Part shown: positions 44,372 to 54,951 of the stretch, one piece after another
Numbering within the stretch: the first letter of the stretch is position 1
Layout: the number at the start of each line of letters is the position of its first letter
Origin: Vitrella brassicaformis CCMP3155
Lineage: Eukaryota > Protista > Chromerida
DNA length: 64,000 nt
NCBI GenBank assembly: GCA_001179505.1
Contig: CDMY01000138.1
Location: forward strand, 120,244 to 184,243
Direction of reading: 5' to 3'
Notes under the pieces: model-generated
Told to the model about the DNA's origin: nothing
Database searches by the model: none
The model's input: the letters and a program-made list of their open reading frames with translations, nothing else
Made by a program: the position numbers and the translations under genes

Positions 44372-46636
44372 CTACTTGGGCAAATTGCCTTCGGTTAGCG
44401 GGTGGTAGGACGGCAGAGCTGTGATGGCCGTGATCTTGGGCTCCTTGTCAATCTACATATCGCCACACACGGACGGATGACAGACAAAGTCTTCTCGTCC
44501 GTCCGTGTGTCTACCTGTCTGTATACCTACCTTGTAGACGCCCCATTTCTGTTTCTGTCGCCTTCTGCGCAGACGGTGGGCGCGGCGCCGCTGCTCATCC
44601 TGCATCCGAAAAACAAGACGAGACACGAATGAACAGAGAGAAAGTGACAGGGCACTGTGGCTGACTTACGAGCGAGTAGATGAGGGCGCGTCGATTCATC
44701 TCAGCCTTGATCAGCCTGCCAATGGAATGCAGGCCCAAGACACACGAGAACAAAGGCAGGCGCAAAGGAATGAAACGCCCCTTTTGCATGTGTCGTATCC
44801 CCATATGATCCGTCATCCATCCATCCACAGACATGACATGCGTCCATGTCTGTGTGCGTACCGGTTTCGCTTTCGTCTGAACTGGGGGTAAGGGCCGCCC
44901 CATATGTAAGGGGGCAGACCTGCTCACACACGATAAAGAAAGTGAGCAGCACGTGCGCCTGTGTCTGACTGGCTGAATGGGTGGGTGGGTGAGTGGGGAA
45001 CTGACTGACTGACTGACTGACCAGCCTCGACCCTCTGGTGCATGTATCTGCGCTTGATGTTGGACAGACGGCGACGGATCTTCGGCTCCACCGAGCGGAT
45101 ACCTGGCCAGTCGACCCGCCACGCACATATGCTCGGTTGTGTGACACCTCCATTGGCTGTTCCGATGCACGGGCCTGAGTCGCCCCAGCCACCCACCTGG
45201 TTTGTGTACGCCCTGCTTCATGGTGAACTTGCCACGAACGTTGTACTGCCACTTGTACCTGCACCAAACGTGTGCATCCGTCCATTTGCTCCACGCATTC
45301 CTTCAAGACAACACCCCCGGCTGTCTGACCTGTAGTCTCTTGTGAGCGGCTCCTTTTGCGCTGTCTGTGGGTTGGGGATGGCCTTGAGCACCCGCACATC
45401 GAGGAGCCGAGGGCTGTAGCGAGGAACCAGCTGCTCCACACNNNNNNNNNNNNNNNNNNNNNNNNNNNNNNNNNNNNNNNNNNNNNNNNNNNNNNNNNNN
45501 NNNNNNNNNNNNNNNNNNNNNNNNNNNNNNNNNNNNNNNNNNNNNNNNNNNNNNNNNNNNNNNNNNNNNNNNNNNNNNNNNNNNNNNNNNNNNNNNNNNN
45601 NNNNNNNNNNNNNNNNNNNNNNNNNNNNNNNNNNNNNNNNNNNNNNNNNNNNNNNNNNNNNNNNNNNNNNNNNNNNNNNNNNNNNNNNNNNNNNNNNNNN
45701 NNNNNNNNNNNNNNNNNNNNNNNNNNNNNNNNNNNNNNNNNGCCTTGATCAGCCTGCCAATGGAATGCAGGCCCAAGACACACGAGAACAAAGGCAGGCG
45801 CAAAGGAATGAAACGCCCCTTTTGCATGTGTCGTATCCCCATATGATCCGTCATCCATCCATCCACAGACATGACATGCGTCCATGTCTGTGTGCGTACC
45901 GGTTTCGCTTTCGTCTGAACTGGGGGTAAGGGCCGCCCCATATGTAAGGGGGCAGACCTGCTCACACACGATAAAGAAAGTGAGCAGCACGTGCGCCTGT
46001 GTCTGTCTGGCTGAATGGGTGGGTGGGTGAGTGGGGAACTGACTGACTGACTGACTGACCAGCCTCGACCCTCTGGTGCATGTATCTGCGCTTGATGTTG
46101 GACAGACGGCGACGGATCTTCGGCTCCACCGAGCGGATACCTGGCCAGTCGACCCGCCACGCACATATGCTCGGTTGTGTGACACCTCCATTGGCTGTTC
46201 CGATGCACGGGCCTGAGTCGCCCCAGCCACCCACCTGGTTTGTGTACGCCCTGCTTCATGGTGAACTTGCCACGAACGTTGTACTGCCACTTGTACCTGC
46301 ACCAAACGTGTGCATCCGTCCATTTGCTCCACGCATTCCTTCAAGACAACACCCCCGGCTGTCTGACCTGTAGTCTCTTGTGAGCGGCTCCTTTTGCGCT
46401 GTCTGTGGGTTGGGGATGGCCTTGAGCACCCGCACGTCGAGGAGCCGAGGGCTGTAGCGAGGGACCAGCTGCTCCACACCCATTCCCTCATAGACGTTCT
46501 TCAGGGTAAAGGAAGAGTCCGAACGCTTCAGCCGAACCTCCACGCAATAGCCTGCATGCATATATGCATCCATCCATTCAGTCAGTCTGTCGGGACCTGC
46601 CTGCATACGTTGGAAAACAGCGAAGGTCTGCTGTGT
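44372..46636 (-). pseudogene. 5'-truncated, intron-containing duplicate(s) of the mitochondrial bL19 gene
   Basis: Contains the exons from TQQTFAVFQ to the stop (44372). Similarity to the full gene ends abruptly at 46636. Segments 44704-45441 and 45742-46479 are near-identical (offset 1038) on either side of an N gap, so this is a tandem copy or an assembly overlap. Confidence 0.78.
45442..45741. other. Scaffold gap (300 N)
   Basis: Run of N; the flanks overlap each other in sequence. Confidence 0.99.
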
Positions 46637-49731: not shown

Positions 49732-50060
49732 TGGCTGGCCTCACGACGCCTGCACAGTCCACACAAGCACCTACAGAACGGTTGAGCCGCAGACCAGGCA
49801 GATCATGCCTCGAGTGAGCTTCTCACCTGCTGATCTGCAGCCGCGCAGCTGCTGATGAGTTCCTTGCCCTCTAGCGGTGGGTGAAGAAGCCTCCCTCGTG
49901 GACCTGCACGCGCTGCTAGAGCCACACCATCCCGTGCGAGCTTGCAGGAGAAAGAGCGACCGATCTTGAGCGACCTTCCAGTTCGACGAGTTATCATGCG
50001 AGAAACATGGTCATCCATCGTGCATCGCCATGAGATCGTGAAAAAACCCTCTGTTCTTCG

Positions 50061-51981
50061 ATGAATGGTTCATCGGTATCGAGCAGTGGTGAGCCGTCCA
50101 AGATCCAACCTGAGGAGGACGGCAGCGCAGCCAATGGAGTGGAAATCGAGAAAAGTGCGGTCGGACTGCCCCCTTCAGTCACGACCGGAGAGCGGCTGCT
50201 CGGAGTCAGCCACACACACACACACGCGTACAGACACACAGGCACACCCGCAGATCAAACCAATCAACGATGCTCTCTCTCTATGTCTGTCTGCGTGTGT
50301 GGAATCTCTAGGAGGACGCACTCAAGTGGATGTTCGTTTTGCTGCGGGCGAGTTTGCTCGTGCCGTATGGTCGGGCGGAGAGGGTCGCTTCGGGCTTCGC
50401 CTGCCTCGTCTGCTGGTACTTGGCGATCATCGATGCCCTTTTTCTGGAGGACACTGAGGACTTTTTCACCGACACCAAGGGCCGTGGCATCCTGTTGAGT
50501 GCCACAACACTTTGGTTTCTTATGTGCGGCGGCATTCGGCTGTGGATGCTGGTCTCAGTGTCGAGGGAGCGGCTGGCCATGGTGTTCGCCTGTCTGGTCA
50601 AGGGCAGCTATTGGACACTGGCCCTGGGGGACCAGAGCAAAGATGTGGCCGAATCGTTTTCCCGGCGGGTCAAGGTGTGGTCGGTGGTGTGCTTCGCCGC
50701 CGCCCTGACTTCGTGGCTGTTGCTGGTGTTTGGCTACATTATTGGCGCACAGACACGTCGGGTCTTCAACTTTCCGTGGGCCGACTGGTTCATCGAGGAA
50801 GAAAGCCCAGGTACGGACGATCACATCCTCAACGGACGACAATCTGATCAATCTGCCCGCGGCCTCGTTCCGTCACGTTGCTTTGCAGGCATTCACTGGT
50901 TCGGGCTCGTGACGGCGATTCTGAGCATCTTTCCGTGCTTTGTGTGGATTGTGCCGCTGCTGCCCTACTCACTGGCCATCAACCTGCTCCACGAGCGATT
51001 TAGGGCGTTTTGCCAATCACTCGACGACTCCATCCGGCCGTTGGAGCGGCAGAAGACGCGGCCAGGGGAGCCGAGCAGCTATGCCGAGGCCGCCGCGGGC
51101 AAGAAGCCCTCGGTGAGGCAGCTCACGCTGGCGCACCGCCAGCTGTGTCAGGGAGTCATGATGGTGGACCGCACCTTTCGCGCTTTCGTCGCCATATCGT
51201 TCACAATCAACACGGCTTTGTCGATCCTGGTCGTCTACAGGATTGTCTTCTTTGGTGGGTGGAATATATTTGGCAAGGACAAGGCAGGCATACAAACAGA
51301 CAGACAGGCGTCGCCACTCATGAGTTGTGGCATGTGTGTGTGTGAAAGGCTACACCGCGTCGAGTGCTGAGGCGGGGGCGTTTGTCTTCTGGTGTGTCGG
51401 TCTCGCCATCCAGGTAGGTCGGTCGGTCGGTCGGCACGCAAGCGCATGTCTGTATTATGTATGCCAGTCACTGTGTGGTGTGAATGACAGTTCTTCGTGT
51501 GTTACAAGTCGGCCAAGTTGTTTTCCTGGTAGGCCGATTGACGGATTGGCTGACTGAATATGCTTGTCTACGGCCTCCATCCCCACACAGGCACGAGCAC
51601 CTGCGGCTCCGCTGCCACCAGGTGCAGGTCGGCCTGCCCTACCACGCATCAAGCACACCCACGTCGCTCGCCTCACAAATGACGAGATGCCACTCCGTCG
51701 CCGACGATCTGACATCCGCGGGGGGGCCAGGAGGCGACAGTAGCACCAGCAGCAGGCGGGCAGTGACGCAGGAGGCCCTCTATGCGCGGCAGGAGCGGCT
51801 TGAGCTGGAGTTGGAGCATCTGCGGTTTTCGCACCAGGTGGAGAGCTTCACCCCTGGCATCACCGTGGGTGGGGCCGTGACGATGAACTGGCGGGTGCTG
51901 GGCGTGGCGGCGTCGGTGACCGCCTCGGTGTTTGTCTTCCTTTATGAGACGCGGAAGAACAACAGAGGAGAAGGGGAGTGA
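50061..51981 (+). CDS. Gustatory-receptor-like (GRL)/DUF3537-like 7-transmembrane ion-channel superfamily candidate
   Basis: Spliced product has about 7 hydrophobic helices. TM4 ends YSLAINLLHERFRAFCQSL, followed by LTLAHRQLCQGVMMVDRTFRAFVAISFTINTALSILVVY (TM5) and AFVFWCVGLAIQ|FFVCYKSAKLFSW (TM6, joined via a small exon). A long loop precedes FSHQVESFTPGITVGGAVTMNWRVLGVAASVTASVFVFLYE (split TM7 with GITV). Confidence 0.78.
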
Positions 51982-53652
51982 GTGAGTGCGTGACGCTTTT
52001 CTACCTGCGTGCCTTGCTCGTCCACTGGCCGCGCCTGTGTGCTTTGCCTGCCTGCCTGCCTGCCTGCCTGCCTACCAGCTTTGCCCGCACAGGGGAGGTG
52101 GACGAATGTACTGTAGGCGTAGCTGTGGGTGTTCCTGTTCGCTCGCTGTGTGGGTGTGGGTGTGGGCAGAGCGGTGCGTTTATCGTGTCTTGGTGCGATC
52201 GCGGTGGCGGTGTCCTGAAGTGGCGTTTATCCCGTGTATTTGCGGGGTGGAGTGGAGTGGAGTGAGTGTATGACAATGCGATGATCAGACACAAGTGGTG
52301 AGCAAGTGTGGTGGATGAGACCACGACCCTTCATCAAGTGCCAGACAAGCGTCAGACAGACAGACGTGCATCCTGTCCTGCATCCATCCGTGCATTCCTC
52401 CTCGAGTCACCCACCCATCATGCCATCCACCCGCTCTACACGTCCCTGAGACTGACCGCTCGACGTTGCGTGCGCATGGAGCTTATTGCGCATGGGCTTA
52501 TGCAACACACCGACAAAAAGTGCCGAAGAACTAGTTACCGAGAAGAACTAGTTACCGAGAAAGCACCTTACGCTCATTTCTCTGTCACTTGGCAGATTTG
52601 AGCCAAGAGACAGTTCATCCATCCATCCACCAATCCACGACCGACGCACATCTGGACGCTTTGCCACGATGCTCGCCCCCTTTTACTGTAGAGAACTCTG
52701 CCCTTGGGGTCACTTCTCTGGAGTAGTTGCCGAGACAGCGTGCCACAACCTGATAGACACACAGACAAAGCCCACAGTCACAGTCCGTTTCTTTCTGCTT
52801 GTGTGCCGTGGGAGAGCCTTTCTCGTCTGTCGATCTCTCTCCTCACAGCCCTCGGTATGTGCTCGTAGCTACTCGCCCGCGGACCCCTACACTCCATCAA
52901 ACATCCGCTGCTTTCTACGCTCTCTCTCTCCCCTGCCCTACTTGTGGCTTTGTGTGGTGTGCACCCACCCCGTTGAGGAGATAACGTTTTTTGACGGAAG
53001 TCGTGTACTATACGCGTATGTTGTGGGGAAGTTAGTGAAGTGTCTGCTCACCGAGAATGACGGCTTGTGGTCGGCACCGGGTACCCCGTCGCCGGCCCTG
53101 CCCATGCGAAACACATGTACATACGATCTTGATGTGAACACCTGCATGCGCACACAGCGACCGAGTGATGCAGTGGGCCCATGAGCGTTGCGCTTTTCCC
53201 GGCTGGCAGTGCTGCAGCATGGCCCATGTTGCTCGGCCGAAGCTGCAAGAAGCAAGAGAGAAACACACACACAGAGATGGAAGTGCCGTGGCGGGTGGAT
53301 CTCTGTTCTGCTCGGCTACAGCGACGACGTGTCGTCACGTCACACGGTTACATGTACTGCAAATGCAGACAGTCAGACACGTAGTCAGACACACACGCGC
53401 TGTGCCCGTACTGCCTAACTGTCTGCATGCATCTTCAATCGCTCACCGATACAGGTGTCCTCCGCACTCCACCTCTCCAGCTGACGCATTCCTTGACCTC
53501 CACGGACCGTCCAATCCATCGCCGTAGCCACGCGCTCGGACAGCTGCCACGGTCACGGGTACTGGTACTGCTGGATCTCACTAGTACTGCTCGAGATCGA
53601 TGAACCGTTCACTGATGCCATCAGTTCAAGTTTCCAGTGGAAGTGCTAGTAA

Positions 53653-53737: not shown

Positions 53738-54951
53738 ATGTTCAAGGAGGTAAGGAAGCCAAGATCTGGACAGGCCACAGCGCCCTCAGCTCAAACAGAC
53801 CACAAACCGCCCACACACACACTTGCGTCTGTGCCTCTCTGCCCTGCCTGCCTGTGCGGCGGGTGTTGCGCGTGTTGTGTGTGCTGGTGATCAGCGCGTG
53901 GTGGTTGACTGCCGCGGGCACATGCTCGGGCGGTTGGCGTCGGTGGTGGCCAAGGAACTCCTCAACGGACAACACGTGGTGAGTCGCCACGCTTGAACCA
54001 CCAAGCAACGGAGCGCAAGCACGAAGGCCGGGAGAGGGTCTGGCTGACGAGTGTGTATGGTGTCGGTATCAGGTGGCCGTGCGGTGCGAGGACATCAACA
54101 TCTCAGGATCTCTCTACCGCAACCAACGTAGGCACCGCACCGCGCACATCCCCGTCGGAGAAAACGGCAGGGCGACAATCCGTCTGTCCATCCCTGTCTG
54201 TCTGTCTATCTGGGTGTCTGTGTGCGTCTGTGTGGCTGTCTGTCTGTCAGTGAAGTACCACGAGTTTCTGCGGAAGACGATGAACTCCAACCCCTGTCGC
54301 GGCCACAAGCACTTCCGCGGTCCCGCCAAGATCTTCTGGCGCACCGTCAGGGGCATGCTCCCGCACAAGACGGCACGCGGACAGGCAGCCCTGGACAGAC
54401 TCAAGGTCTTCGAAGGTCAGTCACCCAAGCAGCAACCAACCAGTCACACCAAACCAGCCAGTTCAGGGGAGGGAGCATTTGAGAGATGGCTTTGTGATTG
54501 TGTGTTGACTGAACATGTTGTGTGGTAGGCATGCCGACTCCGTACGACAAGCAGAAGAAGATGGTGGTTCCAGCGGCGCTCAAGGTGCTGCGGCTCAAGA
54601 ACGGACGCAAACACTGCAGACTCGGAGACCTCTCTGGAAAGGTACGTGATTGAACAAGGCGGCGACGGACTGCGGAAGAGGCAGGGAGGGAGGGAGGGCT
54701 CACCCACGGAGAAGCAGCAGTCAGTCCGTCCTTTGAGTGTTGTCCGTCGTGTCCCTCCCTACACACAGGTTGGCTGGAACTACGACGAGTTGGTGCAGAA
54801 GCTGGAGGCGAGGCGGAAGACCCGCGCGGGGGCCTTCTTCGAGAAGAGGAAGGCCCTCACCACACTCAGACACAAGGCCGAGGCCGCCGACGTGCCCCCA
54901 GCGCTCGACCAGGCCGAGCGAGATCTGCTCGAGTCGACCGGATTCCTTTAA
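53738..54951 (+). CDS. RPL13A: 60S ribosomal protein uL13 (L13a), multi-exon
   Basis: MFKE|[28 protein letters not shown]|[18 protein letters not shown]|..[55 protein letters not shown]|[37 protein letters not shown]|VGWNY...ESTGFL*. Confidence 0.97.

Follow-up and report, generated by a model that had tools for sequence, protein, structure and literature searches.

VbraGRL2 of the chromerid Vitrella brassicaformis: transcript support for a published gustatory receptor-like gene with a putative channel mechanism

With a probability that we place at about 0.9, the gene at positions 50061-51981 of the window, that is, of the whole 64,000-nucleotide stretch of Vitrella brassicaformis CCMP3155 DNA analyzed here (contig CDMY01000138.1), is VbraGRL2, which encodes a protein of the seven-transmembrane ion channel (7TMIC)/gustatory receptor-like (GRL) superfamily with a channel mechanism that we infer. 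The gene lies on the forward strand and comprises six exons and five introns. An earlier note, made by reading the raw sequence, had proposed a protist member of the insect odorant receptor (OR)/gustatory receptor (GR) superfamily at this site and had mentioned reports of GRLs in chromerids. Such reports exist, and the product itself is a published protein: in Table 1 of Benton, Dessimoz & Moi 2020 (PMC7746228), CEL93132.1 is VbraGRL2 and CEM13019.1 is VbraGRL1, two of the six candidate GRLs listed for Vitrella, a chromerid, so that the comparison with published protist GRL lists suggested in the note finds the protein there. The AlphaFold structure of VbraGRL2 was compared with Orco in Benton & Himmel 2023. 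The gene, its family assignment and the test of its fold are already in print, and the finding is not new. The proposed superfamily membership is backed by a profile search and an alignment of profiles, as well as by the predicted fold and the topology.

The coding sequence is 1503 nt long and ends in a TGA stop codon at 51979-51981; all five introns have GT..AG borders. In tblastn and exon-wise checks, the exons of the window were equal, piece by piece, to the 500-aa database protein P0003 (CEL93132.1; UniRef100_A0A0G4ECU2, UniProt A0A0G4ECU2), with a 100% match for exons 1 and 6 and the expected junctions in the other exons, and no mismatch was seen between the spliced cDNA and CEL93132.1. 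P0003 belongs to the same 90% cluster as a shorter database protein, P0001. The latter was retrieved when the read-through of exons 2-3 was used in a word-indexed protein search, together with the 41%-identical V. brassicaformis protein P0002 (CEM13019.1 / A0A0G4FIT4), which is VbraGRL1.

The sequence homology of VbraGRL2 to GR/GRL proteins is weak, yet exclusive to that family. The word-indexed protein search, run twice, returned nothing but VbraGRL1 and the shortened form of VbraGRL2 itself. A profile built from the alignment of the two paralogues (A1) and searched against 1.84 billion representative proteins gave five proteins at E<=0.001, namely the pair itself and P0005, P0006 and P0007. 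P0006, a protein of the rotifer Proales similis (E 1.4e-4), matches the Pfam models 7tm_7 (51.5 bits) and Trehalose_recp (40.1 bits), and P0007 (E 1.9e-4), a metagenomic fragment of 126 aa, matches 7tm_7 (26.9 bits). The nearest relative of the pair outside Vitrella is P0005 (E 2.4e-6), a fragment of 181 aa whose open reading frame (ORF) lies at L005:1297-1842 and L006:587-1132 (Logan SRR31189379 and SRR31189370) and whose PGMTAI..INWRFL..SSAFLLINQLQK resembles the TM7 (seventh transmembrane helix) region of VbraGRL1 and VbraGRL2. In L005, the ORF that precedes P0005 was considered as a possible N-terminal half of a relative and was rejected for lack of similarity, which leaves P0005 as an unplaced C-terminal fragment. 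When A1 was aligned with P0006 using hhalign, the match had a probability of 88% and an E-value of 2.9e-6, and its 177 columns reach from TM3 to TM5 and include the exon 3 region; AHRQLCQGVMMVDRTFRAFVA is aligned there with WHLKLTQAVRTIDKCYQHFVA. It is thus the motifs named in the earlier note in which the homology signal resides.

The predicted fold is that of an insect GR/OR subunit. An AlphaFold2 (AF2) model from a two-row alignment was unusable, with a predicted local distance difference test (pLDDT) value of 44, whereas a five-row alignment (A2) gave a pLDDT of 60.6, a predicted template-modeling (pTM) score of 0.55 and helices at 70-84. In a Foldseek search of this second model against the PDB, as the earlier note had advised, the 14 best rows were all cryo-electron microscopy structures of insect ORs and GRs. 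A structure ranking by Z score placed GR/OR structures in its first 19 entries, followed, some 4 Z units lower, by a G-protein-coupled receptor (GPCR; 7.7) and a syntaxin (7.6). The VbraGRL2 sequence is also present in the ESM Atlas (pTM 0.69), where a comparison of language-model features (0.96) puts it next to GUR/GR clusters with PF08395. In structure, its Atlas neighbors are nematode GUR-4 (template-modeling score 0.65/0.79), GR64a-like and Or2-like clusters, with scores of 0.59-0.65 by query and 0.74-0.79 by hit.

The layout of the protein agrees with this fold. Hydropathy analysis gave seven main hydrophobic segments at residues of about 72-94, 109-131, 168-193, 216-246, 312-336, 345-366 and 469-490, with which the AF2 helices agree; this is the number of helices that had been read from the spliced sequence, and together with the length of 500 aa it fits the 7TMIC range of about 350-500 aa. 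The other landmarks of the earlier note are likewise present in P0003: the L..RF...cq.L motif after TM4 is LLHERFRAFCQSL at 247-259, the H..L...V...D..F motif before TM5 is AHRQLCQGVMMVDRTFRAF at 296-314, the long loop spans about 100 residues at 367-468, and the GITV before the last helix stands in PGITVGG at 459-465, followed by the helix at 469-490, which ends in ASVFVFLYE. In the rotifer GR, G-L-T is aligned where VbraGRL2 has GITV, which the earlier note had described as typical of plant DUF3537 relatives. The segments on the N-terminal side of the membrane amount to 274 aa in total and those on the opposite side to 54 aa; with the N-terminus inside, the inner loops thus exceed the outer ones, as in the 7TMIC superfamily. 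In a crude positive-inside count, the stretches within 15 residues of the helices contain 15 K and R residues on the N-terminal side, compared with 7 across the membrane. This topology fits a cytosolic N-terminus for VbraGRL2.

VbraGRL1, encoded in the same genome, aligns with VbraGRL2 at 45% identity over its full length and shows the same arrangement of helices. The two proteins share near-identical blocks, WIVPLLPYSLA..LLHERFR, AHRQLCQ.V..VDR.FR.FVA and PG.TVGGAV..NW..G.AASV.ASVFVFLYETRK, which are located in TM4 and its exit, in the helix before TM5, and in TM7. The part encoded by exon 6 is 39% identical to VbraGRL1 and nearly identical across TM7.

Several observations weigh against the assignment of VbraGRL2 to this superfamily as a channel. 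Neither the exon pieces nor the read-through of exons 2-3 gave any Pfam match at E<=10, and the full P0003 gave none to 7tm_7, 7tm_6, Trehalose_recp or DUF3537 at the same threshold. The profile check against 7tm_7 and DUF3537 proposed in the earlier note therefore fails for VbraGRL2 alone; only its paralogue VbraGRL1 passes 7tm_7, its 31.2 bits exceeding the cut-off of 26.6. No relevant PDB sequence match was found for P0003, P0002 or the two-row profile. The Foldseek matches to ORs and GRs are weak (E 0.007-0.13, template-modeling scores 0.31-0.49), and the AF2 model, itself of moderate quality, is partly family-dependent because its five-row alignment held an animal GR and a GR fragment. 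The 7TMIC motif of TM7, (T/S)Yhhhhh(Q/K/E)(F/L/M), which is described as diagnostic and not definitive, is poorly kept at the end of TM7 (..TASVFVFLYETRK at 481-493), as the earlier note had seen when it compared ASVFVFLYE with TYxxxxxQF: at most two of the four positions match (S483 and E490, with a shift of one residue), and in the MAFFT register, where ASVFVFLYE lies under the rotifer TYFFVAFQF, none does. In addition, the cited GRL literature reports no function or ion conduction for any protist GRL. Many accepted members, such as divergent ORs and GRLs, escape the Pfam 7tm_7, 7tm_6 and Trehalose_recp models too (PMC7746228, PMC9998090). For most Vitrella GRLs, two conserved positions in the TM7 motif are reported (Benton 2020, PMC7746228). 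In P0005, the same one-residue shift of TM7 brings S, Q and L into agreement with the motif. Matches of P0003 to the Pfam models DUF4129 and Bd2520-like_N were dismissed as noise, both being under their own cut-offs.

If VbraGRL2 works as the solved insect receptors do, a mechanism can be outlined. Judging from Orco, MhOR5, BmGr9 and Gr43a, its N-terminus would be cytosolic, and four subunits would surround a central pore that is lined by TM7b. The conserved cytosolic extensions of TM4 and TM5, together with helix 7a, may build the anchor domain. The assembly could be a homotetramer or may include VbraGRL1, and a path for cations would open once a stimulus binds within the extracellular half of the bundle of helices. 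This picture of tetramer, pore and anchor fits where the two paralogues are nearly identical, namely TM4 and its exit, the pre-TM5 helix and TM7. By this analogy VbraGRL2 is a candidate ligand-gated chemosensory channel, as the earlier note had also put it, and the divergent TM7 motif suggests that the chemistry of its gate may be different.

Transcript data support every junction of the gene model. They consist of L001, an MMETSP-type contig (JGI sample 3300017148), and Logan contigs from four runs, compared with positions 49900-53400. L001 matches the window with 100% identity, with introns 1-4 removed at their exact borders. In contigs of the runs X1, X6 and X7, all five introns are removed, including intron 5 (51528>51591), and record 6 of X6 is fully spliced over 49948-52035; the contigs of run X8 resemble genomic DNA. 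A cDNA that does not join the exons of TM6 and TM7, which the earlier note had named as evidence against its proposal, is thus not the only form, since the joined form occurs in X1, X6 and X7. L001 itself keeps intron 5 (region L001:1173-1300), in which a TAG follows directly after W371 (...KLFSW). Because of this retention, the database protein P0001 is 371 aa long and ends after TM6.

All features of the gene are on the forward strand. Exon 1 (50061..50204) encodes residues 1-48, an acidic serine-rich N-terminus identical in the tblastn comparison to residues 1-48 of P0003, and its junction with exon 2 (50204>50312) is present in X1, X6, X7 and L001. Intron 1 (50205..50311; 107 nt, GT..AG) contains a CA-rich repeat. 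Exon 2 (50312..50810) encodes residues 49-215, with the codon of G215 split, and thereby TM1-TM3 and the beginning of outer loop 2. Intron 2 (50811..50888; 78 nt) is in frame and free of stop codons, and for this reason a raw ORF at 50330-51370 reads through it; its 26 codons are absent from P0001 and P0003. Exon 3 (50889..51254; residues 215-337) carries TM4 and TM5 with inner loop 2 between them, in which the motifs LLHERFRAFCQSL and AHRQLCQGVMMVDRTF are found, and is followed by intron 3 (51255..51348; 94 nt). The earlier note had placed a small exon at the completion of TM6. A small exon is indeed found there, but there are two of them, which together cover TM6 and its exit: exon 4 (51349..51413; 65 nt) encodes residues 337-358 with TM6, and exon 5 (51491..51528; 38 nt) encodes residues 359-371, the end of TM6 and its exit. 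Between them lies intron 4 (51414..51490; 77 nt, phase 0), which contains a (GGTC)n repeat. Intron 5 (51529..51590; 62 nt, phase 2) is located about 100 codons before TM7, and exon 6 (51591..51981) encodes residues 371-500 and the stop codon, comprising the long inner loop 3, helix 7a, PGITVGG, TM7b and a C-terminus of 10 residues; its translation is identical to residues 372-500 of P0003.

The spliced contigs extend beyond the coding sequence on both sides. An apparent 5' untranslated region (UTR) at 49948..50060 contains short upstream ORFs; the contigs start at 49948 (X6), 49960/49961 (L001 and X1) and 49987 (X7) and do not fix the true 5' end. Three upstream ORFs were read from the sequence, at 49996-50064, 50007-50033 and 50030-50041. 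The first, of 22 codons, runs from the ATG at 49996 to a TGA at 50062-50064 and overlaps the main ATG (50061-50063) as ATGA, an arrangement that would be compatible with termination-reinitiation or with translational repression. The apparent 3' UTR (51982..53357) is about 1.3 kb long and carries (TGCC)7 at 52045-52073. L001 is unbroken from 51488 to 53295, and contigs of X6 and X7 cover 52083-53357, though contigs are no proof of one continuous transcript. The repeats in intron 4 and the 3' UTR are (GGTC)n at 51413-51434, the (TGCC)7 just mentioned, (GTGTGG)3 at 52148-52166 and (CATC)n at 52616-52637. At these tetra- and hexanucleotide repeats the Logan contigs break or branch, with many loose ends, which suggests that the repeats of this locus are dispersed throughout the genome.

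The retained intron raises the question of which product is the main one. If intron 5 were commonly retained, as it is in L001 with its called ORF of 371 aa, the main product would be P0001, which lacks TM7, and the full-length receptor would be minor. We consider this unlikely: contigs of three other runs have the intron removed, and the exon of TM7 is the best-conserved part between the paralogues; ratios of isoforms are not readable from contigs. Even more speculative, and quite improbable, is the idea that retention of intron 5 serves as a regulated switch toward a TM7-less, pore-less product, and we judge in the same way a separate possibility, namely that a GR-like gene was transferred long ago between the lineage of the alga and one of animals. 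The transfer is conceivable because VbraGRL1 and VbraGRL2 form an almost orphan pair, whose significant relatives among the 1.84 billion proteins are animal GR-family members and one unplaced fragment; it had been raised earlier as a possibility (Benton & Himmel 2023).

Two further explanations concern the nature of the full-length protein. It might be an unrelated, lineage-specific seven-helix protein that resembles ORs and GRs by convergence or through a generic packing of long helices, which would agree with the lack of a Pfam or PDB sequence match of its own and with the small number of proteins, five of 1.84 billion, at E<=0.001. This seems highly improbable to us, since the few significant matches beyond the pair itself belong exclusively to the GR family, the hhalign match reaches 88% over TM3-TM5, VbraGRL1 lies above a curated Pfam cut-off, 19 GR/OR structures stand about 4 Z units ahead of GPCRs and syntaxin, and an independent language-model search leads to the same family. 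A protein with the 7TMIC fold could, on the other hand, respond to something other than a chemical, either as a sensor of light or of another physical cue, in the way suggested for the nematode GR relative LITE-1, or in a non-sensory role at the membrane. We regard such a role as possible, if doubtful. The TM7 motif, which in Orco is part of the gate and of the subunit interface, is poorly kept; nematode GUR clusters are among the nearest Atlas neighbors; Vitrella is photosynthetic (PMC7746228); and no ligand or function has been reported for protist GRLs. Yet all solved members at the top of the fold search are ligand-gated cation channels, and the conserved blocks of the two paralogues, in TM4-TM5 and TM7, correspond to the pore and anchor parts of insect receptors.

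The ORFs neighboring the VbraGRL2 gene gave no Pfam match that links them to it. Downstream, an ORF piece at 54073-54528 on the forward strand matches Pfam Ribosomal_L13 with 37.7 bits, the only clear match among these ORFs, and is probably an exon of the downstream neighbor gene. Upstream, a long ORF of 596 aa on the reverse strand (44701-46491) has borderline Pfam matches only, to Cys_rich_CPCC (25.2 bits, cut-off 24.5) and, under the cut-off, to DUF6811.

The re-finding of one of the six published Vitrella members adds no new member to the family. It shows, through the earlier note, that even a very divergent GRL family can be recognized by reading raw sequence, and it provides a full, transcript-supported gene model, leading to the published coding sequence, that is usable for expression work. 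Protist GRLs underpin the claim that the superfamily of insect chemoreceptor channels is as old as early eukaryotes.

Compared with the published VbraGRL2, the product of the window is the same protein and nothing differs; what goes beyond the published record is the transcript support for all junctions, the contig that retains intron 5, the upstream ORFs and the comparison of the introns with those of VbraGRL1. The gene of this paralogue (L002:3001-4682, CDMY01000441.1) has one intron, whereas VbraGRL2 has five. The single intron, after Q373, agrees in place and phase with intron 4 of VbraGRL2 (after Q358, phase 0, inside TM6), and introns 1, 2, 3 and 5 of VbraGRL2 have no counterpart in VbraGRL1. 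Introns have been gained or lost between the two genes; intron positions are not conserved between kingdoms (Benton 2020). The paralogues also differ in Pfam, as only VbraGRL1 passes 7tm_7.

The plant DUF3537 proteins (PF12056) belong to the same proposed superfamily as VbraGRL2. Their structural match to it is weaker than that of the animal GR/OR clusters (Atlas template-modeling score 0.44 by query and 0.62 by hit, over residues 147-496), and neither P0003 nor P0002 nor any of the exon pieces matched the PF12056 model at E<=10. VbraGRL2 is not assigned to DUF3537, and VbraGRL1 and VbraGRL2 are nearer to animal GRLs (Benton 2020). Insect ORs and Orco (6C70, 7LIC, AgamOR28 and AaegOR10) rank slightly under GRs in the fold comparison; ORs are specific to insects, and VbraGRL2 has no 7tm_6 match. 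From the structurally solved insect GRs (Bombyx mori Gr9, Drosophila Gr43a and Gr64a), VbraGRL2 differs in an identity of only 10-13%, in the loss of most of TYhhhhhQF and in an inner loop 3 that is far longer (about 100 aa), and for VbraGRL2 a ligand, a tetramer and a current are putative. It resembles these receptors in its length, in having seven helices and long inner loops, and in the split of TM7.
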